Made by a program: the position numbers and the translations under genes. This document shows, in pieces, positions 15,743-52,328 of a stretch of 64,000 bases of DNA. This DNA is from Epithemia pelagica (Eukaryota; Protista; Bacillariophyta). The stretch is from NCBI GenBank assembly GCA_946965045.2, contig OX337229.1, forward strand, positions 5,084,001 to 5,148,000, in the 5' to 3' direction. Under the pieces are notes generated by a model. It had not been told where the DNA came from, did no database searches, and saw only the letters and a program-made list of their open reading frames with translations. How positions within the stretch are numbered: position 1 is the first letter of the stretch; the number at the start of each line of letters is the position of its first letter.

Positions 15743-16062
15743 TTACTCATAGTTAACTCCCGTCCTCTCAAAACCTTTCCAAGACTTAAACTCAACGCAC
15801 ATCCGGGTACCCTTGGTCGCACAACACGCCACACATTCCCGTCAAATCGCGAAAATTCGGCGAAAATTTGTTGAAACTCGGCGAAAATTTGTCGAAATCA
15901 ACGGAAATTTCCAGGAGTCGCACATCACAACACACATCCGGGTATCACATACGTGGTACATACGTGGCACACGTGGTACATCCGGGTTCACATCACATCA
16001 CACATTAAATAAACCACATCACACCGCACATTAAATAAACATCGAACCAACCAAATAACACC

Positions 16063-31106: not shown

Positions 31107-34100
31107 ATGTCGTCGTCATCATCTTCCACCATGATTACACCACCCCGAAATTCATCGTCGTCTCGATCCACACCGTCGGCTCCTCGGAAACGATCCCTAA
31201 TACCATCGTTTCGCAAAAGCACCAAGAACCAGTCGACCCTGGCCTCTCCAACGACACCTACGGGTAGTCGACGTGGCTTGTCATCGTCGTTGCGACGATT
31301 GCCCGCATCGCTCAGTGAGAGCACGGCAGCCTTGTTTGTGCATCCACCGGATGTGGAAGAACCAGAGGGCGAATGGAAGAAACAAGAGATGCATTCAACA
31401 GAAGAACAACCAGGAGACCCGTCCGGCGTGGACTCTTTGCCCTTGTCGTCATCGCCAGTTCGACGATCCATGATACCATCCTTCACCACAAGGAGTAGCA
31501 ACAACAACAATAACAAGAAAAGCGACAACGACAAGCCCCATTCGTCATCTCCCGTCAAAATGTCCACACCCACTCGACAAACGCGTCCGACTTCGGCTGG
31601 GAGGCGATTGCCAGAATCCTTAACCGCAAGTACTACCGCTTTGTTTGTCGAACCATTGGATCTGGAGGGCAACGAGCCACTGCAAAACCAAAAGGAGAAG
31701 AAGAGCTCCATGGACCCCAACAAGAGTGTCGATCCAAACCAACCACAACCGCAAACTACCAACAACAACAACCACGATCCTCCCATGTCTCCCTCCCCCT
31801 CCAGTCCTCCGGGACGGATGGTAAGGGACGAATCGTTTGGACCCATGGAGGAGGAAGGAGAAGGCAACCCTAATAATAATAGCCTCTCGGTCATGATGAT
31901 GAGTCCTCGTCCGGACGATGACACGGACGATCAAGCCAGTCGGTCCAGTGACATGAGTCTCAGCGTTCGATTTCGCATGACCGAAGAACGGTTTGACCGC
32001 CGTTTGTCGTCCTTTTATCACAAGACCAGCAATAACAGCGGGCTGGTGCCAACCAAGGATGGTTCCGCCGAACTTATGGACTCGTACTATGATGATGACG
32101 ATGACGATGATGTGGACAAGCATGATTTGGATGACCTACAGCGACAATTGGATAAAGCGGCTCAAGAATTCATGTTTTTACAAGACAAGGATGAGGAGGA
32201 ACCAGAGAAGAACAACAAGAACGAACTACCAGACGAGCAACCTGGTGTTTCGCATAGCGACGAACCAGACTCTCGCCAACCATTGCCTGAGACGACAAAC
32301 GACCCTTCATCCAAGACTGCGGTACCCTTCCCTCGCAAAGCAAGCAATGGGCGCATTCCGTCACTTACGTATTCTTCCGCATCTTCGTCATCCTTTTCCG
32401 TACCGCCTCTTTCGACCATTACTCATGTGAAACAAACCTCATCCAAGCAACTCTCTGGGCAAGTGGACAAAACCGCCGACAGTGGCAACAGCAAGGATTA
32501 TTGGGTTATTCCAGTGAAAAGTGTGGGAACAGGAGGAGACACTGGTAGTACAGGAGGGGGAGATTTGAGTTGCCACAGTGACTTTACACCCGAAGAATTG
32601 GATGAAACCAACGTCCTGGAGCTTGAGCTCATGGAAGATGAAGACGATGAACCTGTCGAATTGAGAGACGATCAAAGCATTGACATGTTACGACCACCCA
32701 GCACGACGCCCAGCGATATTACCAATGATAACAGCGTTCCTCATTTGGTCGAGTTGGGATGGGTCTCCAAGGACAATCTTGATACCAATGACAACAGCGT
32801 TCCTCATTTGGCCGAATTGGGATGGGTCTCCATGGACAATCTTGATGGTTCCAGTTCACATGTTCCGGAGGAACCCACAACAACGACCACTACACCGGAC
32901 ATGGAGAAGAATGCACCGCGCCGAGATGACGATCCATCCGAAACGGAACCATTCTCAATGTCCAAGTTGGCAGCTCACAGCAAAAAGGAACGACATCCAA
33001 CTTGGTTCACTCGTTTGCCAACGAGTGACACGACAGCACCAAGTACAGATATTCAATCCTCCGCTCAAAAACCATCCAATTCCATGCAGTCGCCGGACAA
33101 CTTAGAGTCAGTAACGCAATCTCCACAAGATGCCGTCAATGAGCTGTCCACACAAGGTACGAACCGTTGATGACTGGTCTATTTACACCCATTGATTCGT
33201 TGCTAACAAATGCTTCTTTCTTTGCTTGAGTCAGCCAAACAAGAGACAGACAGCCTTACTCAAACACCAGTAAACGAAAAGCCAATTAATGCAGTTTCGG
33301 CCAAGAGCATTGGGTCGCTTTCCTTGGATGAAAATTCAAACGATACCGACGACAAAGGTGAACAAGAGTGCAACAAGGCAGTCTCTGCCAAAAGCATTGG
33401 GTCACTCTCCATGGACGATGTGCAAGAAAATGAGCAACATGAAGCGGAAGGAAGTCTGGAGGAGTGCACGACGACGGCTGTTGCGGCCAGGAGCATGGGT
33501 GCCTTGTCCATGGATGACATGGATACGTCCGAGGAGGAAGATGAAGAAGATGCTGAAGAGGAGGCTTCGGAGGAAGCAGCTTCTTCAGAATCTGAGCCAC
33601 CCCCTCGAACAAAACCTGTGCGTCGGTACTCTGGTAATATCCCAACCATGGAAACTATTCTTGAAAGCGACGATGGGGAACCCAGCCATGAAAGTAGCAG
33701 CAGCGACTCCGATTCTGATTCCACCAGTGGGAAACAGGATAAACGGCCCTCTTCTGAAACCCCTTCTTCGAGTAGCGCTACATTGGAATCATCGTTGTTC
33801 TCATTGGAGCGATCGATGCGTTGGAACGGTATTGAAGATTGCGGTGATTTCATCGACCTCGAAGGACCGTCGAAGAAATCGAACCGCAGTATCTGGTTTA
33901 TGGCAGGCCTTATTTTGGCCATGTCGGTACTAGCCGTCATTGTTCCTGTCGCGCATTATTACTTGCAGCCAGCACCGTATCGGAAACGGTTCAAACGCAA
34001 TAGCCGTATGCTCGTCGTAGACCATGGTCCGACGGCATCGCGTCCGCAACAGCAACAAGCAGAGCAGTTGGAAACCAGCAAAGCAAAGCCCGCATCCGCA

Positions 34101-34364
34101 AGCGCATCTTCAACATCATCGACCGCTCCTGCGGATTGTACAGATGAGCAAGTGTCAAGCGACAGGGTGCAGAAGGAAACTCAATACCACACAGAGCAAG
34201 AAGAACCAGAAACAAAGACATCAAGTCCATTGATGTCAAAGGTGCCCGTCAATGATTTCGAGACAAAAGATAGCGAAACCGAAGTTTCGGAAGAAGAGAG
34301 GCCTCATCGGCGTTGGACGTGCCAAGTTTTGGGACGACATCGTTGCCCTTCGTGGGGAAAGTAG
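31107..34364 (+). CDS. Large acidic, Ser-rich single-pass membrane protein (cluster member A1), 2 exons, ~1059 aa
   Basis: Exons 31107-33156 and 33235-34364 (GTACGA..CAG, branch CTAAC). TM segment IWFMAGLILAMSVLAVIVPVAHYYL, then RFKRNSRMLVVD and C-terminal RRWTCQVLGRHRCPSWGK*. Confidence 0.85.
32721..32846 (+). repeat. Intragenic 63-bp (21-aa) tandem duplication in A1
   Basis: TNDNSVPHLVELGWVSKDNLD followed by TNDNSVPHLAELGWVSMDNLD. Confidence 0.93.
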
Positions 34365-35560
34365 ACAATTGCAACCCTGCGCATGGTACGATAATCATTG
34401 TACGGAAACGCACTACATACATGATTGAGTGCATATTCATTCATCCTGCCCATCGGTATGTCCGCTTACAAGAGCACCTTCATGGGACAAGCATAACAGA
34501 AACGTCATTTCACATAGAATTGGAAACAAGGAACTCAAAACGATTCAATTGTGCAATCACTCAAGCCACAATATGTACGACATGCAATATATACAAGGAG
34601 GACCGTTGGTTGCAATCTCCACAAGTGGAGAGGGATCGTGATCCAATGTTGGGAAATGGGCCTTTATACGGACAATGCCCACGCGTTTGTGGGTTGTGTG
34701 GAAAGAAACGCTTCGAAAGCCGAAAGATCCTAACCTTGTTGCGAGTGAAAACCAAGTAGTATCGATATGAATCTACATACTTAGAAGGATTTTCTTTCAA
34801 GTTGACCAAGGGGTACCGTCACTTCAAGTAGTACCTTTTGTTGAGCCAAAAATCTGGACAACCATTTCATCCTCGGGGTTCGCAGACAGAACGCGCCATC
34901 GTTGACCGATCGCTCAGCTCTGTCATTCTTGAGAAAATGAGTAGGCATGAACGTTTCGTCGTTCTATTGAGGGGAGGCGTCCTGGGCCTTCCTGAGTGTC
35001 TACCAAGGACTCAAAGAAGCGACTGTCGTGCATGGATGATGGAGGGGACTGCAACGACAGCTACAGCCGGACGTCGCTGACTCCTAACGTACCTTGTGCT
35101 CAGGCCACGAGCGAATGACAAACCGTGAATACACACAATCAAACGAACAACAAGTACACGGATCAAATTATTGATCTATTGATGGGTTCTGTGTGAGGCA
35201 GGAAAGGTCCTACCTAGCTAGGACAATGTCCGAAGTCCCGATCGAAATGCGAGCGGGCCGTATCTCCTTGGACTGACCACAAGTTACACACCTGTACCGT
35301 ATTGAAGTATATAAGACTGCGGGCAGTGAAAGTGAAAATGAAATGGCCTTGGGCTTGGCCCCAGCCCAGTCGCGTGGTGTCATCCTATTCATGGGTCCCC
35401 TTATTCATGGGTCGAGTAAAACCATGAGCTCTCATCCGACACAACCGGGTTCAAGGCAAGTATATCTCAGTTCTATTCTCATAATAATGATCCAAAAGCT
35501 TTCCTGGTCTTCAAAATTCGGTTTCGTATCCGCCATTGATATACTATCACCATCACGACT

Positions 35561-36961
35561 ATGATTTGCCAACCGAGTAATTCCAGGTTTGCTGCCAACC
35601 GATGTCGTTCGACCAGTATGTCGACAACTGCAACATCAAAAGGAGACTTTCCTACTTTGCAAGAGGAAGAAGAAGAAGAAGAACAAATCTCTTTTCCTCA
35701 TAAGAAAACGTCAACACCTGCGAGCGTGCGCCCATGCTTTCGGATTGGAGCGCTGTTTCAACTGGATCCACGAAGACGGAACAAGTCTTTGCCGTCGTTT
35801 CATCGTTCAGCTCCCATTGTTGTCACCCTTCGATACTATCACAATGGCGATAAAGATGATCGTGGCAGTACCCTTACCGCTCCGCGACATTCAAGAACAT
35901 CGATACATTCCGACACAACGGAGCTTCCTTCCAGTGAGAATGTTGGTAAAGGCTGGACTGTGAAAGAGCAAACCATGTTGGTTCGATTGGATGATCGCGC
36001 AGCCATGCTTTATCAACGCGTGGTGCAAGCGCTACATTTCGAGTCCGTCCAAGAGTTCGACTTGATACGATTCGTGCCACGTCCAGCCGAGTCCGAACCA
36101 ATGCAAAGAAAGGAGCAACCACAAGACTTGGTACAAAACGAGAAACGTCAAGCAACAACGACAATATGTCATCAAGCAGAGCAAAACAACCATTTGAACG
36201 AGACCACCGACCTGGAATGTATAGCATCCACCTCAGCGTTGGTCGCGATACCTCGTACGCGACGTATCCGGCTCAACAAGGTTTTTCAGCCAGTGGCGGA
36301 ACAGCAACAGCAACACCCGTCTCGATCGTCGCAAGGGTCCGCTTCTTCCGCATCATCACTGTGGTCATGGTATACTTACTCTCTTGTTGAAAATACCAAC
36401 AGCAGTGACAGTCTCTCCTCTGTGAATCACAGGAATTCCTTTGTCGTGTTGGTCGTTCAGCGATCTCCTTCAAGGAAAACCAACCATGCGTCCACGGCCG
36501 GTCCTGGTCCTCTACCAACCCAAACACCGCCCAGCAAAAGCGTTTATATGACAACCTCCGAGCCGACAGAGAGTTGTGATTGTGCTTCTTCCATTAGCAT
36601 TGCTGCCACGGCAGGAGATGCGCGCTCCAGAAAAGGATCAATAGAAACAAATTGTGTATGCAGCGGCAGTGAAGACGCACAAGAACAACGGGGGCAAGGG
36701 AATGAACGGCAACAACCACGGGCTTCCTGTTGCATGTTGCATAGTTCTGCTGAAAAAGCAAGGTACCTAGCTGCAACGAGCACGAATGGAAACGAAATCA
36801 ACGGTTCATCGTTCATCACGAACATTCCGATACACATTGAATTCCGAAGGAAAGATGCATCTCCTTTCAACAAGAACTCACAGATTTCTTCGTGTAGTCA
36901 ACCTCAGGGTCCGAGTGTGTCTTGTCATCTTCTCGGCGACAAGATCCCAGAAGATGAATGA
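35561..36961 (+). CDS. Hypothetical protein (466 aa; start may be ~35618)
   Basis: Long clean ORF, mostly low complexity with one ordered-looking segment (IVVTLRYY..MLVRLDDRAAMLYQRVVQALHF..FDLIRF). No family recognised. Confidence 0.6.
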   Translation: MICQPSNSRFAANRCRSTSMSTTATSKGDFPTLQEEEEEEEQISFPHKKTSTPASVRPCFRIGALFQLDPRRRNKSLPSFHRSAPIVVTLRYYHNGDKDDRGSTLTAPRHSRTSIHSDTTELPSSENVGKGWTVKEQTMLVRLDDRAAMLYQRVVQALHFESVQEFDLIRFVPRPAESEPMQRKEQPQDLVQNEKRQATTTICHQAEQNNHLNETTDLECIASTSALVAIPRTRRIRLNKVFQPVAEQQQQHPSRSSQGSASSASSLWSWYTYSLVENTNSSDSLSSVNHRNSFVVLVVQRSPSRKTNHASTAGPGPLPTQTPPSKSVYMTTSEPTESCDCASSISIAATAGDARSRKGSIETNCVCSGSEDAQEQRGQGNERQQPRASCCMLHSSAEKARYLAATSTNGNEINGSSFITNIPIHIEFRRKDASPFNKNSQISSCSQPQGPSVSCHLLGDKIPEDE

Positions 36962-38585
36962 CGGACTTCACTGTCTAAGTAGAGTGTATGACCGGAAAAG
37001 TCTTTGGACAAAATCTTGGGGGTTGGCTGTATATATCATCAATCTGCAGTCACATTGAGCCAAAGACTCGTTATTCCCCACATGTTGGAGACAGCCAGTT
37101 GCCAGACGCTGCTATGTGAGCGACAAGGCAAGCAATTAGGTTCGACTATTTTGAGACACTCATATTAGGAGTATTTTGGCGCCTGCCGTCGAACGTAAAC
37201 TAGATCCTTTCCATGTCGTTTTTCTTTCCATGTAAAATCAACATTGCATGTCTGATTCTTTCTTCCCCATGTTTCTTGAAATCGTCAATGTTGTGTTGGT
37301 GTTGGCAGTAATGGGCTTCAAACTTCAAAGCGATGATCGGACAAGACACAACTATGTGCTCGTTGAGGCGCGACTGATCCTTGTTTCGTCCGCAAGGACG
37401 CACGGCGGGCCATTTAAAAGAATCGTTCCACACATATTCATGGCAAACACAACAATTTGGCAATGTTACTTGGTCAGCATCCAGCATAAGGATCGTCCTG
37501 TACAAGGTTTGCAGTAAAAATACTCTGGAGTTTCCCATGTGTGGTTCGAGGGGACACATAGACATATTGATGAGCAAAAGGACAGCCACAGCGTATGACT
37601 TGCGACGAGAATCCAAAGTCAGATAGATGTGATCCACTGAAGCTTTCCCAAGTAGCAATGAATTGCAACAGGTGGTGTCAACACCTTTCCGAGAGACTGT
37701 GATATCAATATACAGTGACCACAAGTCTTTTGAATATGGCCATTGGAAGCGGGAACTCTATCGGTGGACGCTTCTGCGGCCTGAAATATGAGGCTGAGAC
37801 GTCATGGAATATATTTTCTCAGGGATCTGGCACAGTGACACTAACAGGTTCATCTTTGTAGGATTTTCTGTTCGCTAGCATTATCACAAACGATTCAGTC
37901 GCAAAATCTACGTCAGTCGGTCATTGTTTCGGACGAAAACTACCACCTCAAACACTTCGTATTACCCGCCATCATGACGAAAAATGATTTGTGGCACAAT
38001 AGCCTATCTTGTCGAAAGCACAAGCTTTTCCTTCCGCTTAGTCCAACAGGAGTTTAGAGTTGTTCAATGTCTTCGCATTCATGGACGAAGAATTACAAGA
38101 ATTTTTACGCGACCCATTGGCGTTTCAAGATGTGACATCATTGGCGTGAGATGCGACGTCATGTAGCAAAGTCAGTCGCACGAAGGAAGAGGAAAAAACT
38201 TGGGAAACGTTTGCTGTCTGCTTGAACGTCGCATCGGAGACGATGATATCGCCTTCTTCAGATTCGTCGAAGCACTGAGTCAGTGAAGTACTGATTGGAC
38301 TATTGGTAATTTGTAATGTGTTGAGGCGGAGGAGTCGCCTCTCGAAGTCGAAGAGCAAGAAGGTTGCGACAGGAAATCGGAAGCACATGAAGACATGGAT
38401 GCATCTGACGGCCCTCATTTTCAATGCGTGGCGGCGGCAACAACTCCGCACGTAAATCGAATCTACTTTCTCTCCTCGTGTTGACAAACATGACAAATCC
38501 ACTTTGCATTCATTTCAAACCGAGAATAATAATTATTGTTCTGGGACGCACCTTATTTTGAAAACGGAGTAGAACCCAAGTAACA

Positions 38586-39239
38586 ATGGCAATGGCAGTT
38601 GCCTCGTGCGCCAAAGCAACGACGTCTAGTGCAGATTTCATTGCTACTCCATCCGAGTTGGCCGAGTTAGATTGGACGGATGAATTCACTCAAGCCCTTT
38701 CGCATGATTTGTTGTCATGGTGGTTGACCTCGTCTGTACTTTCCCAGCACAAGCCAAAATCGAAACTACCCAACCACGATAGCAACTGTAACAACAAGAA
38801 TGGTGAAACTTTCACACGGCCCGCCTCTTCGACAGCTGCAACCACATTGGTCAGTCGTCGTGCTTCGTTGCGCTATGTGGGATTTGGACAGTGGACTCAA
38901 GTGCTGAGCGTTTCTCCCCGACCATCCCTCTTGTCCACCTACTTTGTGGCAATTCTTCCCCCTTCCTCCCCCAATTCACGGAAGCAGCGGATCGTACCAA
39001 GATTGCCAGTCACATCTTCGAGTTCCACAAGGCGTCCACCGACTCAAGTTGTGGTGGTACGCAAGCGTCAAACGATGGCCTCTGCAAGGCGTCCACCGAC
39101 TCAAGTTGTGGTTGTTCACAAGCGCCAAACCACAGCACCAGTTCAACCACATCAACCAAAACCAAAAATGGCTGCTGATACTGATTTTCAAGAATTAGAC
39201 TCTCTCGTTTGGTTGGATGCCGGTAACCACGAGGACAAG

Positions 39240-39272
<33 letters not shown>

Positions 39273-39701
39273 CCAGCAAACCAAGATGAAGACGAAGCTG
39301 TTGTACAACAAATGCTGCAACAATGGGAACACGAACTTGGAGTAATGGTAACAAAGGAAAGTAAACAGCAGTGCTCTAAGACCGTCAAGAAATCCTCGAG
39401 GCAAGACAGTCAGTTTTATCATCCTCCAACCCACCTTCATCATCAACACAACAGCCAGGGGTCAATTTTGTGGATATTTCTCTTTTGGATGTGGATTGTT
39501 TCCATGACTCTCACTGGCTGGTTTGAAATGGATGATCACTCTGTTTCTTCTTCATCGTCGTCTGCTTCACCAGGAAGGACAACAACCACTACTCGGTCCA
39601 GGTCCCATCACCACCACCACCACCACAATTCCAAAGATGTGCCGGAACGATTCAAGCGTAACAGTCGCATGCTGGTGGTGGATCCCAAAGCGAGCCGGTA
39701 G
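38586..39701 (+). CDS. Single-pass membrane protein (cluster member A2), 371 aa
   Basis: TM segment SILWIFLFWMWIVSMTLTGWFEM, His run, RFKRNSRMLVVD close to the C-terminus, and an internal 20-aa repeat RRPPTQVVVV(R/H)KRQT x2. Confidence 0.8.
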
Positions 39702-40497
39702 CCCCATGCAGACGGAACGGCGTGGCACAACTGGGGAATTCACATGGACGTTTCCAGGGTGCTACCATTCCCGCTTCTTCATGTTGATTGATTCCTTGCA
39801 ATCCCGTACACCTGTTGCTGGCTCGACAGCAGGATTTCCGGTACTTGTCCCAATAAAAGGGAGCCTCGAGTGGTCTTTCCCGTTATGTTCAAAGCATGAC
39901 TTGGTCCTCAAGTGTCATTTTCACACGGACTTGCATTGAATTTAGTTTGATGGCATTCCCCCTACGGAAACCTCTTGTTCAGAACAAGAAGCGATCACAC
40001 GCAAAGCACTTGCCATTCCTAGGTTGGAATCAACGAGACACATCCGACCTCATCTCCCATCGCTCCGATAGAAGCTAGGTACTCCTAGAAAGAATCACAA
40101 AAGTTAGGTGAAAGATAGACATGAGTTTCTTGTTTCTTCTCTCTCTTCCCAAAAGACATTCTAGATTGCCTGTCATGGTGTACCCGTCGTTGGAAAACGT
40201 GTGATTGTGTGCAGCGATGTGACTGCTTTGAAAATGGCTGGTAGAGCAAAGTCAACAATGAGACGCAATCTCGTCGCAGAATATCAACCGGTAGTTACCT
40301 TTGCACTAATCAATAGGGTAATCCTAGTTCATTAGAGTTAACTTTTCTTTTCTAAAATACATTTCTAAAAATTGTGCACTTTTTGACATTTGCTTCTCTA
40401 AGATACCTGGGATCGTTCCTCCTCCGTCGGTTCAACACAACGAGTGTCAATGCCAAGGCCTCTTCTCTTTCAATTTCAGTGGGGCGTAACAATGCAT

Positions 40498-41730
40498 CTA
40501 GTTCACCCTGTCTCGCCCTCCCCAAGAAGGACACCTGTGGCGACCGAGAACTTTGCACGTCCAACGTCTCTGAGGACCCGTTTCGATGCTGCTCTCGAGA
40601 ATTCCAACTTGAACTACCTCCTCTTCATCAGTAGTCAAATCATGATCTTCGAGCTCTTCCTCTTGTTCTTCAACGTTTGGTCCTTGATTGCGTCTATCTA
40701 CAACCAACATGCGACTGTTTCTCTTGAATCGTTTGTGTTCGACTGGCACTGGTTCTGGTGCTGTGGTGGTGGCTTGCGGCATGTCGACCTCGTCAACGTC
40801 TTCTTCCATGTTCATCTCTTGCACATCCACGGCAAGAACCGTCTCGGTTTGTACGACCTGTACAGTCTTGTGATCTTCTTCTTCATGGACCAAAACTCCA
40901 CCAAGCCCAGACACAGCCAAAGCAGAAGTAAGAATTGCAACAAGGAAAGTTACGACCATCAAGTACCAGACCATTGATCTGGACTTTCTTTCAATCTTGT
41001 CGGTACTCCTTGCCATACCCACATCCTTCATTGTGATTTCTTCATCTTGTTCGAAAGCAACGGAATCCACATCACCTAGATGTGGAGTGACTTGAAAGAC
41101 ATCTTCGGACAGTTCGAACTTGATGAGGACTTCCGCAGGGACACAACTGCTCTCACTTTGTTCTGTTGTCTTGGAGGTGTTCATTGTCTCTTGTGATTGC
41201 AAGTACTCCTCCTTGTTCGGTTCTTCATCTTTTTCACCGTACGTAACAAGAGAGGTTGTACTACTGCACACTGTTGTTGTCTCATCCATCTCTTGCATCT
41301 CTTGTTGCTTCACTGTTTCCCCTTCTCCTGGGATGTCGATGTGATCTACAGGGGTACTAACAGTAAAATCTTGTGATGCTTGTTCCAACTCTCGTCTTAG
41401 GTCCAAGAGGTAGTTCTCCTGATGCTTGGCAGAGTCATCATCCTCAGATCGGAATGAAAAGTCATCTTCACTGCTAGAAGCGCTCAAGCTGGTCATGTTA
41501 GTGGGGCTTGGAGGTGACCCTAACCCTTGGTAAAACGACGTGAGGTGTTGATCGATTCTCCTCTCCGTCAAACGAAACCGGCCTCGCAGACTCAGTTGTT
41601 CTTCTTGATCACTTGTCGTGCTGGTTCGAGTCGTTTGGCTAAGTTCGTCTTCTTGTGGCTTCATGGGGGCAGACGATCGGAGGTCCGTCGTGGTGTCCGT
41701 TTCCATTTGATGGTTTAGTTCGAGTTTCAT
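40498..41730 (-). CDS. Acidic single-pass membrane protein (cluster member A3), 410 aa
   Basis: Shares with A1 RFRLTERRIDQHLTSFY, LDLRRELEQASQDF, a TM segment, RFKRNSRMLVVD and RRWTCKVLGRHRCPSWG. Confidence 0.87.
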   Translation of the reverse strand: MKLELNHQMETDTTTDLRSSAPMKPQEDELSQTTRTSTTSDQEEQLSLRGRFRLTERRIDQHLTSFYQGLGSPPSPTNMTSLSASSSEDDFSFRSEDDDSAKHQENYLLDLRRELEQASQDFTVSTPVDHIDIPGEGETVKQQEMQEMDETTTVCSSTTSLVTYGEKDEEPNKEEYLQSQETMNTSKTTEQSESSCVPAEVLIKFELSEDVFQVTPHLGDVDSVAFEQDEEITMKDVGMARSTDKIERKSRSMVWYLMVVTFLVAILTSALAVSGLGGVLVHEEEDHKTVQVVQTETVLAVDVQEMNMEEDVDEVDMPQATTTAPEPVPVEHKRFKRNSRMLVVDRRNQGPNVEEQEEELEDHDLTTDEEEVVQVGILESSIETGPQRRWTCKVLGRHRCPSWGGRDRVN

Positions 41731-42020
41731 GGCTGCTTCGACTTCGAGTAACTTGTGGATGTCACAGATTTGCTTCTACAATTATTCGTCGCTGAATTTA
41801 TGATCCTTTCGTGGCATTCATCGAATTGGAAAGATGATGGAATCTCTCTGCTGGTGGCAGGTTCTGCATCAGTTTCAAATTGCAGTGGTGTCACCTCCTG
41901 CAGCCGGTCCTTTCGTTGTTTGGATGGGATGCGTTGTTTTGCTTTGCGACCCAACTGGCCTTCGATGAGGTGGTGTCTATGCGACAGCAACAGAGAACAT
42001 AATTCTGTCGCTTCTTCTCA

Positions 42021-42297
42021 TACTCTAAATCCGTCCGACCCTACTATAGATTCGGACGACAGTTCGAGATGCGTCGATCGGAATTGGTTGTCGGAGGTTT
42101 CTCCTACTCTCAATCCGTCGGTTCCTACTCTCAATCCGTCGGACCCTCCTATAGATTCGGACGACAGTTCGATATGCGTCGATCGGAATTGGTTGTCGGA
42201 GGTTTCTCCTACTCTCAATCCGTCGGAAGCAAAACCTCCCTCCTATAGATTCGGACGACAGTTCGAGATGCGTCGATCGGTATTGGTTGTCAGAGGT
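42021..42297. repeat. Degenerate ~84-bp tandem repeat (3 copies plus a 21-bp partial) upstream of A3
   Basis: Core CCTATAGATTCGGACGACAGTTCGA(G/T)ATGCGTCGATCGG recurs three times. Units start at about 42021, 42126 and 42210. Confidence 0.9.
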
Positions 42298-42677
42298 GAC
42301 GCACAGACATGAAGTACAATTGCCCTTATGGATCTCTTACGTGGTGGGTGTGGCCCGCGCTCACAAGATCGCGAAACGATCGGTGGCCTCATTTTTCTGC
42401 TTCCGAAACGATGAATCATCGCGCCTTCTTCATCGCTGGATGTTCTGGGACACCCGTCATTTTGGTTCCTCAAGGATGACTTTACCTACCCTGCTATTGG
42501 GTAGCTAGAGCTGATCGCTAATTTCGCGAGGGCTAGCTAAACTTTATGTACAGTAGGGTTCGAGATAAATAGCCGTGTTCAAGACCAAACGAGTTGTTAA
42601 TTGTTCTTCTTTTCTATGTCGCATTTGAGTCTCGTATTATGATGATCGCTAAATAATCTTTCCTGTTTGAGTCGTGT

Positions 42678-42761
42678 TGGTGTCCACTGGTTTCGACTTG
42701 GTGTCCACGGTTTCGACTTGGTGTCCACTTGTGTCCACTGGTTTCGACTTGGTGTCCGCTG
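42678..42761. repeat. Minisatellite array A, left part (units TGGTGTCCACT / TGGTTTCGACT), split by the Harbinger insertion
   Basis: ~11-bp units. The array continues at 45854-45920 after the element. Confidence 0.92.
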
Positions 42762-42944
42762 GAGAGTGGGGTAAACCTGATAATATCAGCCCCACTTCAT
42801 CATAGAAAGGCAGACCGACTATGTTAGCTATTGCTAGGTTAGTAAGACGATCAACAGAATAATAGGTAACTTAAAATATAGTGTAATCGGTCCCCACCAC
42901 CACCCGGTTTTTGCAACCGCGACACAAGAACACTTTACAGCTAT

Positions 42945-44008
42945 CTAAAGGGCCACCATTTTGTGGCGCATTCCACCCTCGAATTTTGCATCCGGTTCGT
43001 CTAGGAATACCATCAGTGCACGAAATCCATTGATAGTGTCAAACAAAAACTCGTAGTCAAACTTTGACTGTACTGCAAAAGGCAAAGAGAGGACAAACTT
43101 GGATCTCACATAATCAGTCTGTTTTTCTTTCAATTGATTGAATGCATCTTCTAGAGCCAATTTCTTACGAATGTTTTCATCCTTCTCCATCCACTCCTGG
43201 GAGAACTGCTTCAACAGTTCTCCCACATCTGTGCTATTGGTAGGCCAAATGATTGTCACAATCAGTTCCTTCTGTGACTCACCAACCTCAATGTCGCAAT
43301 TTGTTGTATCTCTGTGCGCAACCCCAGTGGGCAGGTTGATCACTACAACCACATGCTTTTGTTTGTTCTGATCCACCCACTGGGTCAGCACATGAGGGGG
43401 CGTCCATTCTTTCATCATATCCTTCTTTTCTGACTTCTTTCTCTTGTTTTCCAATGCTCCAAGGTCAGCACCACCAACTGGAACGGCGACTCCAGACCTT
43501 TTTTTCTCTTTTCCTTGTAACAAATTCATAGCTATACTCTTAATTTTATCTGTAGAGAAAGAGAGAAAGAGCAATAGATGAGAGAACATTAGGTAGGTAC
43601 CAAGAAGTCGCCAATTTTGATCACGTACCATGACTTACCTGGTGCACCTGGTGCCTTCTTCTTCCCAAACAAACCAGAACCAGGGGGAAGGTCGTCGTCT
43701 GCATCATCCTCAACATCTTCCAATGGATTGAAACTCTCTTCCTTGCTGGTCACCTTACTGTCCTGTTCCTTTGGGCCATCTCTCAAATGGTATCCATATT
43801 TTTTTTTGAGTTTATTCAATGCAGTACGAAATGATTCAAGCTTGTACTTCATGAACTGTGGATGATCAGACCACACTTGCTTTGGTGCAGCGCTTGCTGC
43901 AAAGGCACGATTTTTTACCAAGTCTTCCAGGTACTCAGCGTCTGCTGTCCTGGAATCCCAAGAGAGTAAGGGACCTTCACCAAGGGAGTTCCTACCGGAG
44001 CGTGTCAT
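42945..44008 (-). CDS. Harbinger accessory (ORF1, putative DNA-binding) protein, 2 exons, ~324 aa
   Basis: Exons 44008-43639 and 43549-42945 (GTAAGT..CAG). The N-terminal helical domain WDSRTADAEYLEDLV..PKQVWSDHPQFMKYKLESFRTALNKLKKK fits the Myb/SANT-like partner expected in Harbingers (inferred). Confidence 0.8.
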
Positions 44009-44736
44009 AGCAATTTTGGAATGAACGTTGGGGAGTTTAGTACCTGGGTGGTTTTTTTGGCAAAACCAAACTATGACCAAGAAAGCATACTGGGTAATTG
44101 GTATTCTGGTCTGACCAGGATCAGACCGGGTCTGATCCTGATTCTTATAAATGAAGATTTCTCCATGACATTGGCACTTATGCCAATACTGAACCGACCT
44201 CCTTGTTCCTTATTTAATGAGTTAACTGTGGGTCGATTTAATATAAGGATTAATTACGTAGGTTGTCTTTGGGTCTGGTGGTAAAAAAACGACCCAGGTC
44301 GTTTTTTTCGACCCAGGCAGCTTTTTCATTGGCAGACCAGACGACCTTGTTGATGAGCAATGTTTAGGCTTAAGTTATATCTAGTTAACTCTTTTTTCAG
44401 TGAATAAGAGGGTCGCTTCTATACTGTTTCTAGAGAGACTTGCGAAAAGTTATTCATGTTTCAATATTGGTCCTCATCACTGAAACTGATACAGTGGTCT
44501 GATCCAAGATCTGACCGGATCAGACCCAAGTGACCCAGAAATAGTGACTGTGACCATTTCTGTACTTAGATTACTCCATGGCGTTCACGTAAAGACAGTC
44601 ATACATTAAATTCGAACACTACTATAACGAAAATTCTTGATGAACGAAAAGGAATAGAGTTTTGGCATTGGAACTTAGCTTCACTGCACGGCATGGGCAC
44701 CAACATGAATATCGCATAAACTCACAATTCCTGACG

Positions 44737-45676
44737 ATGGAGGTGAATGCAGGAACATTCATTCAAAGTGCTCTTCCTATGATGGGGAAGAATGGGAATC
44801 CAACAACAAATGAGTTTCATAGAGCTTTTCGAGGCTATTTCAGTCTAACCCCTTCTCTTTGTGTGCATGTGTGGGACGAAATAGAGAACCTTCTGCCAAG
44901 AGGAGGGAAGCCATTCCACCTGTTGTGGGGACTTCTTTACCTTAAGGTTTACGCCTCAGAAGATGTCCTGGTGGCAATTGCAAATACAACAAGAAAGACT
45001 TTTAGAAAGTGGAGTAAGATAGTGACAAAGCTGATGGCTCATCTTAACTATGTAAGTACTGGTAAGTGTTCATGAGGACGGCGTGTACCAGTTTGTCAGC
45101 ATTGTATTCTCACCATCTTTGTCCTGTTTTCTTTAGATAAAATGGGAAAATAGATATGATGCAAGAAAAGAAGGACAATGTTGCTTCATTACTGTTGATG
45201 GAACAGACTTTAGAATTTTTGAGCCTGCTCCATTTGACCCTAAGTGGTTTTCCCACAAATTCAAGGGACCTGGGCTGCGTTATGAAATTGGAGTATGCAT
45301 CAACACTGGGTGGATTGTGTGGTGGAATGGCCCATACCCTTGTGGGACATGGGCAGACCTCAATATCAGCAGAGATTGGCTCATAGACGAAGTGGATGAA
45401 GGGGAAATGATGGTTGCAGATGGAGGCTACAATGATGGTGGAGAATACTTCATTACACCGTCTGGACACAACAACTTTATGGACAAAATGATGGCTGATG
45501 CAAGAGCACGACATGAAGTAGTCAACAGCTACTTCAAAAGGTACAACATTCTAAAAGACAAATACAGAGGTGACCTTGGATGGCACAATGTGGTTTTTGG
45601 GGCGGTGGTAAATTTGGTCCAGCTTTGTATCGAAAACAACGACCTCGATGTATTCCAAGTCGAAGTAGAAGATTAG
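44737..45676 (+). CDS. Harbinger DDE transposase (DDE_Tnp_4/HARBI1-like), 2 exons, ~284 aa
   Basis: Exons 44737-45051 and 45137-45676 (GTAAGT..TAG). Motifs ITVDGTDFRI, WFSHKFKGPGLRYEIGV, VADGGY, RARHEVVNSYFK. Confidence 0.93.
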
Positions 45677-45853
45677 TCTAGCTAGTAGTGCTAAGTGTAG
45701 TGGTCGAAAGACCGGGTGGAGGTGGGTTTAGCTACACTAATTACGTTAGACTGTACTCCTTTGTTATGACTACCTATCTTTTCAATACGTATGGAAACCA
45801 TATAGATAGAACAACGTTCTGGTATCAGATAATATCAGGTTTACCCCACACTC

Positions 45854-45920
45854 CTGGTGTCCACTGTGGTTTCGAGTTGGTTTCGAGTTGGTTTTGAGTT
45901 GGTTTCGGGTTGGTTTCGAC
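45854..45920. repeat. Minisatellite array A, right part
   Basis: CTGGTGTCCACTGTGGTTTCGAGTTGG.. continues the array at 42678-42761. Confidence 0.9.
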
Positions 45921-46299
45921 CCCTCTACAAACTGTGAACGCAATAATCAAACATTCTCGTTCTTTTCTGTCATTGTCAAATGATGCGTCCCATGATCCTA
46001 AAGCGGAGCTACCGCTGACAGGTGTTGGGCAACAAGATTTCACAGGGGATATGGCGAAGCAATCCTATCCTACAACTAGCTCAAACAGTACAAATCGCCT
46101 CCTCTACTCTACGAGTTGCATAGTCCATAGGAAATCTAGCTTAAATGAGCATCGTTCACGTTCATCCACCCGATGCTCAAAATCTTGTCGTCAATCCGTT
46201 TGCCTTAGTTGATTGTTGTTACATCCATTCAAGTCCAACAGGAATGTTGTTTGCAGTGTTGTCGCTGGCATGATGCTCGTCCGAATAGTTTGCGTCTAG

Positions 46300-47470
46300 T
46301 TGAGTATGGTCGTGGTGTTGTTGCCTTTGTTTCGTTCGGGCGTAACGAGGAGCTGATTGTTTAGTATGGTGCTGCTACCGAGGCCGTGAGAAAGGAGAAG
46401 GATTTGATTGTTGCGGATAGTGTCATTGTCACGGATTAATTCGCTCGACCGAAAGGAGGAGCGGATTGTTGGATGTGGTATTGTTTTCGTTGTCACCACT
46501 TGCTGTCGTTGTCGCTCGTTTTCGTTCGTTGTCATTGTCGCCGCTTGTGTTGTCGCTCGTTGTGGTTATGGTTGTCGTTTTCGCTCGTTGTCGTTCTCAC
46601 CGAGTCCTGTCGTTGTCGTTTTCGCTCGCTGTCGTTGTTGCCACTTGTGGTTGTGGTTGTGGTTGTCGCTGCTAGTCGCTTGCCGTCGTTGTCGTTGCTG
46701 CGACAGTCGTTGTCGCTGCTTGTCGTTGTTGCCGCTAGTCGTTGTTGCCGCTAGTCGTTGTTGCCGTATGTTGTCGATGTCGCGTCTGGTTGTCGCCATC
46801 GCCACTACTATTGCCTTCTCAACGATTTCGATTGATTGTTGAGTATGGTGTTGTTGTTGTTGCCGTTGTTGTTGTCGCTGTTGTTTCGTTCGGGCGAAAC
46901 GAGGAGTTGACCGCGGATTGTTTCGTTGTCGAAAGAAGGTTGATTGTTGCGTTTGGAGATGTCGCAACACCGGTTGTAGGAGGACAAGAAGATGAGAAGG
47001 CCAGATCCGAGACAATCAGATCACCTTGTTGCATTCATGTTGCTTCTTGTTGTTTGGGAGGTGGTTGTTTGTTGCTTCCTTGTTGTGGTTGGTTTCGTTG
47101 TTGGGTCAAAACAATCAGTCTGGTTGCCGTGTGTCCTTGTCGTTGCCCTCCCATGCCTTACCCATCCATGTCGAATCTTCCATTGTCGTCACTGCCTGCA
47201 ATCTTCGTTTATTCCATCATCATTCGACTCCAGTCTTGATCCTCTTGTTGCTTCGTTCCAACCAAAAAGTGGAAGACTTCCCAAACTTGCCGTACGTCTG
47301 TGAAACTAGCCAACTCATCCCCGCCCGTCCATTCCCTCACGGTACACTTGGTTCGTTCCGCGGAGCTTTCGTGTTCTTGTCTATGAAGATTGGTGGTGGT
47401 CGTTGTTCTGTCGTTGTTTGATTGTTGTTGTGATCCTCGTGCTCTGATGTTGAGGGCGATCTGCACTAGC
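46300..47470 (-). repeat. CAA/CGACAA-rich repetitive tract, related (inverted) to the interior of the element at 53963-55666
   Basis: Degenerate (GTT/GTC)n on the + strand. It shares an ~80-bp unique block (47271-47350) with 54160-54239. Confidence 0.75.
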
Positions 47471-47514
47471 ACGCCAATCAACCCATCCAGACCGTCGTGG
47501 TGTCATGATTTTGT

Positions 47515-47654
47515 TGGTTTTGACTTGGTGTCGACTTGGTATCGACTTGGTGTCCACTTGGTTTCGACTTGGTGTCCACTTGTGTCCACTGGTTTCGACT
47601 TGGTGTCCACTGGTGTCCACTGTGGTTTCGACTTGGTTTCGACGTGGTTTCGAC
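47515..47654. repeat. Minisatellite array B (uninterrupted direct-orientation copy of array A)
   Basis: GGTTTCGACTTGGTGTCCACTTGTGTCCACTGGTTTCGACTTGGTGTCCACTGGTGTCCACTGTGGTTTCGA nearly matches the reconstructed empty site of array A. Confidence 0.92.
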
Positions 47655-48268
47655 ATTAACTCGAATCCACACGTGCTTGGGCCTTGCGGACTCGAAAACA
47701 TTTATAATTTAAACCCTAGTTTAACGGTCAAAATCAATTTTGATCTTATTTCAAGATCAAAAATCTTAAATATAATAAAGTCAACGGAAAGTCTCATTAA
47801 GTACTGCACTTATTCTGCTGTAGTAGATCGCTAAATTCACACTGTACCACTTTAGAAGACTACCACGAAAGCGGAAAAGTCCGTGCCGCCACCAAAGTAG
47901 CGGCTGTCCCTGTTGCTTGGTGCGTTGGCGTTTCAAGACCATTTGAGCGAGTGATTCCCTCGTGTTTGTAACTGTTGAAACTGTTCTGGAAAAGCAGAGT
48001 CGGTGGAACTTGCTCTGGAAAAGCAGAGACGGTAGATATTCGGGGTTAAGGTCCCAAAGGTTATCGTCTCCATGAGCGATGCGAAGTGGCGCTTAACACA
48101 AGCAGATATGTACAAAATATGTAAACTAGATTTTAAATTTAATATGTACTATTTCAATCTCTTCATCCCTCCTTCGACTATGCACAGTTTGTTTTGGCAG
48201 CGACCCTTTGAGCCCAAGCGTCGCCAATTGAGATGTTTTACGCTTTAGATGCATAGATGAATCGTGCT

Positions 48269-49704
48269 TCAATTCACTTTTGTGTCCGACATTTGCATAC
48301 GACCAAAGAGCTTTCGAGTCCAACGAACAACCCGGTGCGTTTTGCGAGTCTTCTTTTCAACTACGCTTGGGACAGCCGGAACGACTTTGTCCTCCACTGC
48401 TTGAGGAACAGGGACAGCCGCAGGGACAACCCGTGCTGTGTCTTCGACAATGGCAGAGGGTTTTACTTGGTCCTTGAGTTCAATCATCCCACTAGAGAGT
48501 AAACCAAAGATGAAAATCCAAAATACCAACATCCAGACCAACGCTCCGCGTCGTCCAGCTTTCTTGGTTGTGCTAGGATGCGCCAATTCTTCTGGTACTT
48601 CAGTGGCAGTCACCTCGTTGTCGCTCACTGGAGCAATCTCTGTGTAAGGGAGAAACGAAGTAAATAAGTGTGAATCCCCGAATTTGAAGTCCACGGAGGT
48701 GCTTGCCAAACAGTGTATCACGTACCAACTTCTGCTTCCGTATCTTTCGAGTCATCACTTTGTTGAATCTCAACACTGGAGGGACTTTCCGTCATCTGTT
48801 CCGTGGAGGAGGGAGAAGCGACTGCTTCATCCTCGGCCGAAGTCGTTTCGGACACATCGCTGTCCAAGTCTTCAATGGGGGTGTCTTCAAGTTCCTCGAC
48901 GCTTTCGGTGTTCACTCTGACAGTCACGTCATCAATGACAACCGTTTCATGTTGCTCGGGAAGAGACTTGTCCCGACTGGTCTCGTCTTCTTCCGATACA
49001 ACGTCATCGGTGTGATGAGAGGCCCATTCTTGCTGTTGTTTACGAAGAGCTCGCTTCTTCCAAGCTGCAGTTCTTCGCTTCCATGCGCCCCATCGTGTAG
49101 CCCAAACAAGCTTCCAGGCTCGAAGAAAGACAAAGATCATGTTTTTTCTTGTTTTCATTTTCTTGGCAAGAACGCCGCTCTGACGATCCTGTTTCACTTC
49201 CTTTTGTGGAACTGGCTGCGGCGAGATATCACCTTGTATGTCCTTGCTTTCCAAAGTGATACTTTCTTGAGTTTCGGTTGTTGTTGATATTTCCACCAAC
49301 TCCAAAATGGGACTCTCACTTTCCTCAGCTGTGTCCGTGACGTCAAAACGAACGCTTGTTTCCTTCTTGGAATCCGCTGGGACATTGTGTTCTTCAAGGG
49401 GTTGCATGAGCTGATCATCCATGTTGGGTGTCTCTGGCGCATTACAAGCCATGTTTGCGAGTCTCTCCTCAAACACAACGTCGTCCTCATCAAAAGAGGG
49501 GGCTTCTTCATGCACAGCTGTCGAATCATTCGCCTCGGAATGAGGCATCTCTTCTTTCTTCAATAAATCGATATGGTTCTGTTCATGAGTCGCATCCGTT
49601 TCCATGTACAGATGTTTCTCGTGCTCATTTGTATCCTGAACAGTGCCCATCGCCGAAGCGAGAGGGCACGAGAGACTTGTGTTTTCGACGACTGATGTTT
49701 GCAT
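48269..49704 (-). CDS. Acidic single-pass membrane protein (cluster member B1), 2 exons, ~449 aa
   Basis: Exons 49704-48726 and 48639-48269 (GTACGT..CAG, phase 1). TM segment ALVWMLVFWIFIFGLLSSGMIEL, C-terminal RVVRWTRKLFGR. Confidence 0.83.
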
Positions 49705-51206
49705 TCTGTCAAGCTACACGGATTAGTTTACAATTGTTACCTTGATGGTTGTTGAGCAAGTTCACGTGGCTTTCAAAGATATCTCTGCTCCAAGTTATAA
49801 TGAGAGTGTGGTGGACCCCAAACCACTCGCTCTCTTTTGGCGAGTCGGAGGGAGTTCATCGATCCACTACCTAGTCTATTGTGCTGGCTGCTGCGCTGTC
49901 GGATTCGTCTGTACAGCGGTGGTACAGCAAGCACGAAAAATTCACTCGTTTTTCGGCGGGGCGTAGGAGAGTTCCGATTCATTTAGCAAGAACCAAGCCT
50001 TGGATGATGCGATGGAGAGGGTGTGTGTGTGTGCGTGTCGGGGTTCGTCGATCATGAGTTGTTCGTCCTGCTTCCGGCGTTGCCGTGCGAACGACAAAAG
50101 GGAACGATGATGCGTAGGACAAAAGGTGAGGAGGACAAAGGAGAAGAGAACTGACTCACCCAGCTCGGATATTTTCTCTCTCGAGTGACAGAACATGGGG
50201 GATAGCTTCCGGATACAAAGATATTCAATATAAACACCCTATCTCCGAGAAATAGACCTCTCTTAAAGTATTCCTCTTCATATTTCTGCTCCGAAATCTG
50301 GGGTGTTGACACCTGATGTCAGAGCGAAACTCCCCCAGTCCCCACCCCCAATCCCCCATAGTTCGCGGTAAAACTTTGATGAGTCACGGTGAGTGCCTAT
50401 TTTAGCGATATACTATGAATGGATATGTTCTTTCCCGCTGGAGATTGCGTTCCCGAACGCATTTTCTCCAACTCCAGCGCGATCGTGTGTTCATCGTCCT
50501 GATTAATCTGGGTTGATGAGTAGACGGACCAACAACCCGACAAGTTGTGGTTTTGCTCTGATCTTGCCTACCTAGCTTCGAGCATGGCTATGATATATGA
50601 TATCCTTTCGATTTCGAGTGATGACTCAGATCTTCCACTCTTGCCTCCGTCAAATGTGACGCAACAAATGCTTTCTAGGAAACGATTGGGGACATCATCA
50701 TCGGCTGGAGTCACTACGGTACGTAGTCACTGGTTCTATGATAAGGAGCTCATGCGCTTTTGTGGAGAGATAACTTCGCTGAATTGAGTCGCTCTCTACG
50801 GCCCCCTCATATTTCGCTGATTGATGATGGGTGGGGTTTTGCGACCAACTTTTGCTGTGGATTTTAGCAAACTTTCTCGCTCGCGCTTGTTGCTTGCACC
50901 TCTTTGGCCGTACTCACCCTCATTATCAAATGTTGCGATTGTGCAATGCCATTAAAGACTTGGATCCAGCTCGTACTCCTGTGATGGTTGTGAGTTGAAG
51001 AAATGGCACAACTGACCCCTTGAAGCGTCGTTGGTGTAGGTCGTTGCGCTGCAATATTGACATCTAAAATGCTGTGTAGACTACCAGATGTTAAATTATG
51101 TACACTGGGGGCGGTCGATTGGAGCGACTGTCCAGATAGGGTTCCTGGTTGTCATTGTCGTTGACGGGGATAGATGCGGATTCGACTAGGTTGCCTCCAA
51201 CTGTTT

Positions 51207-52328
51207 TTATGATGGGACCTCTGCACGATTGCGACGGAACAATTTCTGGGCCCAACGAGCGACGCGGTTCTTACGTTGGTGTTGCTTGGTCGGTGATTCA
51301 GGTGCCAATCTATTCTTGTTGTCTTGAACTCCATCGTTAGTGTTCTCCTCCATGGTTTGAATAGGAGCTTCAACCTTTAATTGCCCGTGTTCCACGACGG
51401 ATTCTTGTTTGAGACCGTCGGATTCAATCTCAATGGTATCAACATCCTTTGATGCTTTTGAATTTTGCGTTAGCCGTTCAAGGCTGGTAGTGGATACTGG
51501 CATAGCACCTTTCATATCTGCAACACTGTTGTCGTCACTAACTTCTGAAAAAGAGTTGAGTTCGTCCATACTTCCATTGGAAATTTGTGCAATGGTTGCT
51601 GTTTGATTCTCTGCAGGATCAATATTCTTACTGACCACTGAATGAGGGTCGTGAAGTTCAATAATACCATTCGAAATCATGGCCAAAATCATGAGCCAGA
51701 ACACAATCAAATAAGCCAAATCACCAAGACTTTTTCCTTTGCCTGCTCCGGTGCTGTCGTTTGTTTCTTTGGCGACGAAGACTGGCAAATCAGTTTCAGA
51801 CAATTAGACAACAACAAAATAAACAATCAAGATTCGACAGGCTTGCTTCTAGTGGAAAACGAACGTACCTTTGTTGGTTCCATTCGCCTGCTGTTTTTCC
51901 ATTTTGTTGTCCACCATCTCAGAGCAACAATCGCACTGATCGCAATTGTCTTCTTGGTTCTCTTCCGCACCTGCCGTTTCTACGCTTGGCGGCACGTTCT
52001 CCTTCGTTTCCTGTGTCACTGCTTTCGACGTTGGTTCAGTCTGGTTAGCAGGTACCATTACCACTTCGGAAGGGACAGAAGCAGTAGAATCATCAACGTC
52101 TTCATCCTCTGAAGATCCTTCTGTACGGCTCGTATATTTCATTTGGTCGTCGTCAACCTTTTTGGCAGAAACGGTATCGTCGAGATTCTTGGAGGAGGAC
52201 TTGCCATCGTCGGATTGGGGCACGTCGTCGGATTCGACCTTCGCCCTTCCCTTGTCGTAACAAGGCGGATCCATCTGTGCCATTACCTTCCAGGTTGATC
52301 CAGTCAGTTGCTCTCCTTGTTTATGCAT
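51207..52328 (-). CDS. Acidic single-pass membrane protein (cluster member B2), 2 exons, ~344 aa
   Basis: Exons 52328-51869 and 51781-51207 (GTACGT..CAG, phase 1). TM segment LAYLIVFWLMILAMISNGIIEL, C-terminal RVARWAQKLFRR. Confidence 0.83.

Follow-up and report, generated by a model that had tools for sequence, protein, structure and literature searches.

A cluster of predicted single-pass membrane proteins in the diatom Epithemia pelagica belongs to an undescribed, lineage-restricted family and may encode cleaved precursors

We analyzed a stretch of 64,000 nucleotides from the genome of the diatom Epithemia pelagica (assembly GCA_946965045.2, contig OX337229.1, positions 5,084,001 to 5,148,000; referred to here as the window, with a GC content of ~48%). 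At positions 31107 to 52328, the window carries a cluster of five predicted single-pass membrane protein genes, which we call A1, A2, A3, B1, and B2. An earlier sequence-only reading of this DNA had placed five gene models there, and all of the corresponding sets of open reading frames (ORFs), read from the sequence, were present (Table 1). A2 and A3 are single-exon genes encoding 371 and 410 residues, and the spliced predicted proteins of A1, B1, and B2 have 1059, 449, and 344 residues, respectively. Phase-1 introns starting with GTACGT had been claimed just before the transmembrane (TM) segments of B1 and B2; both restore the reading frame in phase 1, and a third phase-1 intron, in A1, starts with GTACGA. 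Because exon 2 of B1 and that of B2 have no ATG ahead of the membrane helix, the spliced models with exon 1 are required. Besides its three exon 2 repeat units, A1 contains an N-terminal duplication of ~100 residues and a 21-residue duplication. A Kyte-Doolittle scan detected one TM-like segment per protein and none within the first 40 residues, in agreement with the claim that all five proteins lack a signal peptide and have a single TM helix. The N termini are acidic in four proteins, again as claimed (isoelectric points of 4.2 to 4.6), and A2 is basic (isoelectric point of 9.8).

Table 1. Predicted features of the cluster, of its Epithemia clementina relatives, and of the A3 structure model. 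Positions are those of the window unless stated otherwise; HMM, hidden Markov model; nt, nucleotides; pLDDT, predicted local distance difference test score; Cys, cysteine.
Feature	Position	Strand	Description
A1 exon 1	31107..33156	+	683 codons + 1 nt; acidic, disordered, internal repeats
A1 N-module	31944-32171, within exon 1	+	N-module HMM, E = 8e-32
A1 intron	33157-33234	+	78 nt, GTACGA...CAG, phase 1; read from sequence
A1 exon 2	33235..34364	+	Three AVSAKSIGSLSMDD-like repeats; TM helix about 33897-33953
A1 exon 2 motifs	33987-34022; 34308-34361	+	RFKRNSRMLVVD; RRWTCQVLGRHRCPSWGK tail
A2	38586..39701	+	Single exon; basic N terminus without N-module; B-type TM pattern 39483-39536
A2 motif end	39648-39683	+	RFKRNSRMLVVD; stop codon 5 codons on
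A3	40498..41730	-	Single exon, 410 residues; N-module 41326-41625; TM helix about 40906-40962
A3 motifs	40696-40731; 40525-40569	-	RFKRNSRMLVVD; Cys tail
B1 exon 1	48726..49704	-	326 codons + 1 nt; acidic, disordered
B1 intron	48640..48725	-	86 nt, GTACGT...CAG, phase 1; 33 residues before TM helix
B1 exon 2	48269..48639	-	B-type TM pattern 48470-48523; tail RVVRWTRKLFGR 48299-48325
B2 exon 1	51869..52328	-	153 codons + 1 nt; acidic
B2 intron	51782..51868	-	87 nt, GTACGT...CAG, phase 1; about 20 residues before TM helix
B2 exon 2	51207..51781	-	B-type TM pattern 51648-51701; tail RVARWAQKLFRR 51231-51257
ACA910_013909	E. clementina array		N-module only, as called
ACA910_013910	E. clementina array		Long form with Cys tail
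ACA910_013911 and ACA910_013912	E. clementina array		Short forms, stop 9-12 residues past 12-mer
ACA910_013890	Contig of E. clementina array		Fifth E. clementina member; has RFRRNSRMLVVD and RRWSCKVLGRHRCPSLRG
First N-module helix	A3 residues 41-69		AlphaFold2, pLDDT 80-91
Second N-module helix	A3 residues 100-123		AlphaFold2, pLDDT 80-91
Membrane helix	A3 residues 244-276		AlphaFold2, pLDDT about 93
DNA transposon	42761..45854		3.1 kb; 27-nt terminal inverted repeats (93% complementary); between A3 and B1

The three A genes have the peptide RFKRNSRMLVVD in common, as the sequence-only reading had noticed. The further elements that it had described in A1 and A3, namely, RFRxTExRxDxxLxSFY, a subsequent LxDLxRxL helix, and RRWTCxVLGRHRCPSWG, were likewise present in both. 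The anatomy of the A type comprises a predicted cytosolic N-terminal module of two helices (the N-module), a membrane helix that is not conserved, and a predicted exoplasmic tail with the 12-residue motif RF(K/R)RNSRMLVVD (the 12-mer). Long forms carry RRW(S/T)CxVLGR(H/R)RCP near the C terminus (the Cys tail), and short forms end 5 to 12 residues after the 12-mer. Among the five window genes, the N-module HMM matches A1 and A3 only.

Next, we looked for relatives of these proteins, searching the spliced genes A1, B1, and B2 exon by exon. A word-based search with A3, which was saturated by low-complexity words, returned only 2 matches, and a similar search confined to the C-terminal module of A1 was too stringent to retrieve even established members and thus does not bear on absence. 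Of the A3 matches, one (P0001) is a 99%-identical allele from a metagenome assembly at ENA (locus L001, which is 99.4% identical to the window), and the other (P0002) is a 549-residue hypothetical protein of Epithemia clementina in which the four A motifs all occur, in unchanged order. Its locus in that species proved to be a one-strand tandem array of four A-type genes, ACA910_013909 to ACA910_013912. In an exhaustive HMMER search, a profile of full-length members plus trimmed fragments was compared with 1.84 billion representative proteins; it recovered 8 proteins, five from E. clementina and three from two metagenome assemblies (one of them the assembly with L001), and no family member outside Epithemia-like genomes, although the composition filters of HMMER and the 50% clustering of the library may hide members. 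An A-type tandem pair is located at positions 10001 to 11758 and 14081 to 15847 of L004 (ENA metagenome assembly ERZ25042306), where both copies have the N-module, the helix, the tail RRWSCQVLGRRRCPL, and a phase-1 GTAAGA intron ~40 residues before the TM helix. The motifs and their order recur in the E. clementina proteins P0002 to P0006 and in L004, and two further cytosolic motifs, S-I-S/C-S-x-D-S/T-x-L-T and V-P-x-E-V, are common between genera.

Outside these genomes, a protein-guided scan of JGI metagenomes found no relative, and a degenerate 36-nucleotide pattern for the 12-mer matched neither JGI metagenome contigs nor any of 185,579 prokaryote genomes. The sequence-only reading had recognized no known family, and searches of Pfam, PDB, and the ESM Atlas bear this out. 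None of 8 exon products had a significant Pfam match (best E value = 0.046), and neither did the neighboring ORFs; PDB profile searches gave nothing significant (best E values of 0.018 and 0.49), with no PDB relative for the two helices of the N-module; and the ESM Atlas yielded no usable match. Because the family is held together by short motifs alone, ordinary homology searches barely detect it. It is well supported, on sequence comparison, that the A type is a real, undescribed, and lineage-restricted family, and likewise that the cluster represents an undescribed family restricted to Epithemia-like diatoms, with largely disordered proteins that have one membrane helix each and a few short linear motifs under strong purifying selection.

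The 12-mer peptide is identical in 6 of 7 copies, and the single K-to-R replacement retains R-x-[KR]-R. The codons behind it are a different matter: any two of the seven copies differ at 4 to 13 of the 36 nucleotides, and all differences save the K-to-R change are synonymous. A peptide kept despite this many nucleotide differences indicates purifying selection on the peptide and not gene conversion. The Cys tail follows a similar pattern, and outside the motifs the proteins are unalignable between genera.

The B-type genes encode a conserved membrane helix and a tail of the form RVxRW(T/A)xKLFxR. B1 and B2 are clear paralogues by sequence: BLASTP aligned their helix blocks (E value = 3e-9) and tails (E value = 2e-5), and against composition-preserving shuffles, the helix scored z = 12.4 and the tail z = 7.0. 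A third B-type gene (B3, encoding P0012) lies at positions 6887 to 10999 of L007, another contig of the metagenome assembly that holds L001. Its exon 2 has three copies of a ~60-residue unit that B2 has once (two extra copies), a B2-like unit occurs about four times in its exon 1, and a 34-residue extension takes the place of the B2 stop. HMMs and regular expressions detected no B-type gene in ~34 kb of sequence surrounding the E. clementina array, nor on L003 or L004, and the B type was found only in this organism.

The link between the A and B types runs in part through A2. The sequence-only reading had described a TM pattern common to A2, B1, and B2; the common pattern is present, but its spacing is FW-x9-G-x2-E-[LM]-x-D, not x7 after FW. 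The TM segment of A2 resembles those of B1 and B2 far beyond shuffled sequences (z = 8.1 and 10.4, respectively), the B profile matches A2 at an E value of 2e-5, and the A2 helix is unlike every A-type helix. With a B-type helix and an A-type 12-mer, A2 is a mosaic, as had been proposed. An alignment of the C-terminal tails of the two types had also been proposed; a resemblance was found in 9 of 10 pairs (z = 2.6 to 4.2, P = 0.002 to 0.03), but it is weak, and the tenth pair, the L004 tail and B2, gave z = 1.1 and P = 0.15. A phase-1 intron lies 20 to 40 residues before the helix in B1, B2, both L004 copies, P0002, P0004, and P0005. The sequence-only reading had staked the A/B similarity on a profile-profile comparison, and there it was not significant: hhalign assigned the A C-terminal module (C-module) and the B profile a probability of 9.5%, over TM columns only. 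In addition, the A C-module HMM matched B1 at an E value of 0.04 and did not match B2. The unity of all five genes thus follows from the A2 helix, the weak likeness of the tails, and the shared intron position. From these sequence comparisons, common ancestry of A and B is probable. If instead A and B were unrelated neighbor families, A2 would be a recombinant that had acquired a B-type helix, and the likeness of tails and introns would be due to chance. The two profile comparisons would then be expected, as would the failure to find the B type within 34 kb around the E. clementina array. We consider this scenario doubtful, however, since it has to set aside the strong match of the A2 helix with B1 and B2 (z = 8 to 10), the resemblance of nearly all tail pairs at the same terminal position, an intron position shared by B1 and B2 with five A-type genes of two other genomes, and the common architecture and tandem arrangement.

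We then evaluated the orientation of the proteins in the membrane. Of 13 proteins, 11 have a net charge of +1 to +5 in the N-terminal flank of the helix; in the other two, A2 and B2, this flank has a net charge of 0. The C-terminal flank is neutral or acidic in all 13 proteins except A1. Given the lack of a signal peptide and N-terminal parts of 200 to 900 residues, an orientation with the N terminus inside and the C terminus outside (N-in, C-out; type II) is predicted, and from the sequences this is a reasonable prediction. An AlphaFold2 model of A3, run with the family alignment (mean pLDDT of 53), shows three confident helices (Table 1). Everything outside them, including both exoplasmic motifs, is predicted to be disordered, so the motifs would be reachable by a protease.

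We tentatively propose that these proteins are anchored in the membrane N-in, C-out, as precursors from which small peptides are released by cleavage at conserved basic sites, a reading of the sequences that seems to us quite possible while falling short of probable. The proteins would insert as type II, with a cytosolic N terminus and an exoplasmic C terminus, and a kexin- or furin-like convertase of the secretory pathway would cut after RF(K/R)R|N and RR|W in the A type and after RVxR|W in the B type. One released exoplasmic peptide would begin with NSRMLVVD, and the other products would be basic peptides of 15 to 26 residues starting with W, of which those of the A type could form a C-x7-C disulfide loop. 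Sorting or regulation would be the task of the cytosolic module. What speaks for such processing is that each conserved exoplasmic element starts directly after a basic, proprotein convertase-type site. RFKR or RFRR, predicted to be exoplasmic, is present in all 7 copies of the 12-mer, and in 5 of the 7 there is at least one K or R at the two positions before it. RR precedes W in 5 of 5 long-form A tails, and R-V-x-R precedes W in B1, B2, and B3. Past the last basic site, the tails have 15 to 26 residues and a net charge of +3 to +4, with C-x7-C in the A type. Pennate diatoms are known to use a disulfide-containing peptide pheromone (review, PMC12843257).

Several observations weigh against the proposed cleavage. 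The 12-mer, first of all, is more conserved than a cut would demand: a convertase site does not normally require eight primed-side residues to be invariant, and the 12-mer must therefore also act in binding or be bioactive. Peptide precursors usually carry a signal peptide and not a long cytosolic N terminus. Both L004 copies lack the 12-mer (RFKRNSRMLVVD), and in A1 a basic cluster 10 residues past the helix blurs the charge rule. Between the window and L001, the five genes show 25 nonsynonymous and 11 synonymous differences as well as indels that keep the frame, which means that constraint is weak outside the motifs. Finally, the L001 allele of A1 (P0007) has a 19-nucleotide deletion (window positions 33017 to 33035) that shifts the frame 47 codons before the splice donor and is followed by a stop; the allele may be null, the assembly may contain an error, or the A1 exon model may be wrong there.

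The excess of nonsynonymous changes and the frameshifted A1 allele, together with the repeat expansions and length polymorphisms, are also what one would see if these were orphan genes drifting to loss in a functionally unimportant cluster. This is very unlikely in our view. The other ORFs of the cluster are intact in both haplotypes, the motifs are invariant between genera despite saturated synonymous sites, and tandem arrays have been retained in two species, E. clementina and E. pelagica, that are said to have split about 35 million years ago (PMC12377750). The sequence-only reading had spoken of an old, selected, lineage-specific family. For the A type, this description is upheld by the E. 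clementina array and the constraint on the 12-mer; it is less well supported for the B type, found in this organism alone, and for the sequence outside the motifs, where constraint is weak.

The invariance of the 12-mer fits a binding interface better than it fits a cleavage site alone, and the proteins could accordingly be read as uncleaved membrane adaptors. The exoplasmic 12-mer and tails would then dock a conserved lumenal or extracellular partner, the cytosolic module and further motifs would recruit host factors, and the B-type helix would interact within the membrane. The B-type helix is indeed conserved, with a polar G-x2-E-[LM]-x-D at its outer end, and has 8 synonymous and 8 nonsynonymous differences versus 15 and 28, and 6 and 13, in the rest of exon 2; the additional cytosolic motifs common between genera also suit adaptors. 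Such a role would leave unexplained why the conserved exoplasmic elements all follow R-x-[KR]-R, RR, or R-x-x-R and why the short forms end 5 to 12 residues after the 12-mer, and we regard it as possible, with considerable doubt.

The predicted type II orientation and the conserved cytosolic module with its two predicted helices also suggest a comparison with regulated intramembrane proteolysis, as in ATF6, bZIP28, and CREB3-like proteins. A site-1-type cut at R-M-L-V would be followed by freeing of the N-module for signaling. RxLx or RxxL is the pattern of site-1 protease substrates, and RMLV fits it, although matching such a pattern does not by itself discriminate. Pfam detected neither a DNA-binding domain nor any other effector domain, the A-type membrane helices are not conserved, A2 and the B type have no N-module to release, and the conserved C-terminal tails would be left without a role; we therefore consider this route distinctly unlikely. 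Motif readings as FFAT-like, KASH-like, or TonB-box-like were dropped by eye, because the residues concerned lack conservation or do not lie at a terminus.

The sequence-only reading had the family interleaved with transposons, and this reduces to one polymorphic element with terminal inverted repeats, the transposon at 42761 to 45854, which is exactly absent from the second haplotype (L001) and is not part of the family. By eye, its ORFs are Harbinger/PIF-like; Pfam gave no significant match. The check for synteny that had been suggested showed that, apart from the family itself, the window and the E. clementina loci have only Copia elements in common: a Copia-type polyprotein ORF at window positions 16039 to 21747 is 56 to 61% identical to elements beside the family genes of E. 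clementina (L005) and L004. Between A1 and A2, an ORF of 466 residues (35561 to 36961, + strand) has no TM segment and no Pfam domain; with 2 synonymous and 0 nonsynonymous differences between haplotypes, it is more constrained than the flanking family genes. Just downstream of the A3 start, a tandem repeat at 42018 to 42297 encodes TLNPSDP..DSDDSS units in an opposite-strand ORF (41755 to 42312) and is partly duplicated in L001. Within the genes, A2 has a poly-glutamine polymorphism at codon 247 (window position 39327), where the L001 allele has 33 additional nucleotides of CAA/CAG repeat, and A3 has a 3-nucleotide GAA-repeat polymorphism at codon 282.

Among the models for the conversion of a nitrogen-fixing bacterium into a permanent cell compartment, Epithemia is a leading one. 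E. clementina and E. pelagica share 1,109 gene families that are found only in these two species and whose role is unknown (PMC12377750), and 3 of 6 host proteins enriched in purified diazoplasts (Ec_g12982, Ec_g13000, and Ec_g24166/03819) belong to the Epithemia-only orthogroup OG0000250 (Frail et al. 2025, PMC12377750). Like OG0000250, our family was found in these two Epithemia species and in no further diatom (8 matches among 1.84 billion representatives), and it has no domains. Moreover, Ec_g12982 and Ec_g13000 are 18 gene numbers apart, and on one contig ACA910_013890 is separated from ACA910_013909 to ACA910_013912 by 19 to 22 locus tags. In contrast, the low number of the orthogroup suggests a family larger than the roughly 5 members found here. 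This spacing of gene numbers provides a lead, rather unlikely to hold but worth recording, that our family is OG0000250 or lies within it. The fuller version, that the proteins belong to OG0000250 and sit in host membranes of the symbiont compartment with their C termini facing the symbiont, cleavage delivering NSRMLVVD... and W-C-x7-C peptides, is less likely still. If true, they would be a membrane-anchored counterpart of the legume NCR peptides, and this in a symbiosis for which hardly any import of host proteins is reported. Without the symbiosis link, this is an ordinary though neat lineage-specific family. Either way, one genus-only family gains a concrete anatomy (a predicted orientation, a 12-residue motif, candidate cleavage sites, and small basic predicted peptides), and "hypothetical proteins" become testable hypotheses on processing, peptide release, and localization.

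Among known systems, the predicted N-in, C-out single-pass topology is that of BRI2/ITM2B and of ligands of the TNF family such as EDA, APRIL, and BAFF. In BRI2/ITM2B, a furin-like cut releases a 23-residue, disulfide-looped C-terminal peptide, and our family likewise resembles convertase-cut type II precursors in its exoplasmic R-x-[KR]-R and its small, two-cysteine C-terminal predicted product. Unlike BRI2 and the TNF ligands, it showed neither a BRICHOS nor a TNF-homology domain, nor any sequence similarity in Pfam and PDB searches; its N terminus is long, disordered, and cytosolic, and cleavage is here only predicted. With ATF6, the plant proteins bZIP17/28, and CREB3, the family has in common the predicted type II orientation, a conserved cytosolic module, and perhaps a lumenal RxLx-like site, to which RMLV may correspond. 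It differs from them in having no bZIP or other DNA-binding domain detectable with Pfam, a tiny lumenal part, and, in the A type, a TM helix that is not conserved.

KASH proteins and the plant WIP and SINE proteins also have a divergent cytosolic N terminus, one helix near the C terminus, and conservation in the short lumenal tail only. The tails of our family are longer, however, at 50 to 150 residues, their conserved motifs are not at the C-terminal extreme, and they have no PPPX or VPT; the C-terminal ends themselves differ from one another (..SWGK, ..GRDRVN, ..HSSVD, and ..SLRG). A likeness to the RXL-processed biosilica proteins of diatoms (silaffins and cingulins) was rejected, as there is no N-terminal hydrophobic segment and RML lies after the TM helix.

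Host peptides directed at bacterial symbionts, such as the legume NCR peptides and the short AMP (antimicrobial peptide)-like imported proteins of Paulinella, offer a parallel for the predicted products, as does SIP+ of Seminavis, a disulfide heptapeptide pheromone and thus a diatom precedent (PMC12843257). Their precursors are small and secreted and have a signal peptide, whereas the predicted precursor of our family is anchored in the membrane. As in those systems, the products predicted here are lineage specific, short, basic, and cysteine bearing, and as in the NCR and Paulinella settings, the host carries an endosymbiont, in this case an obligate cyanobacterial one.

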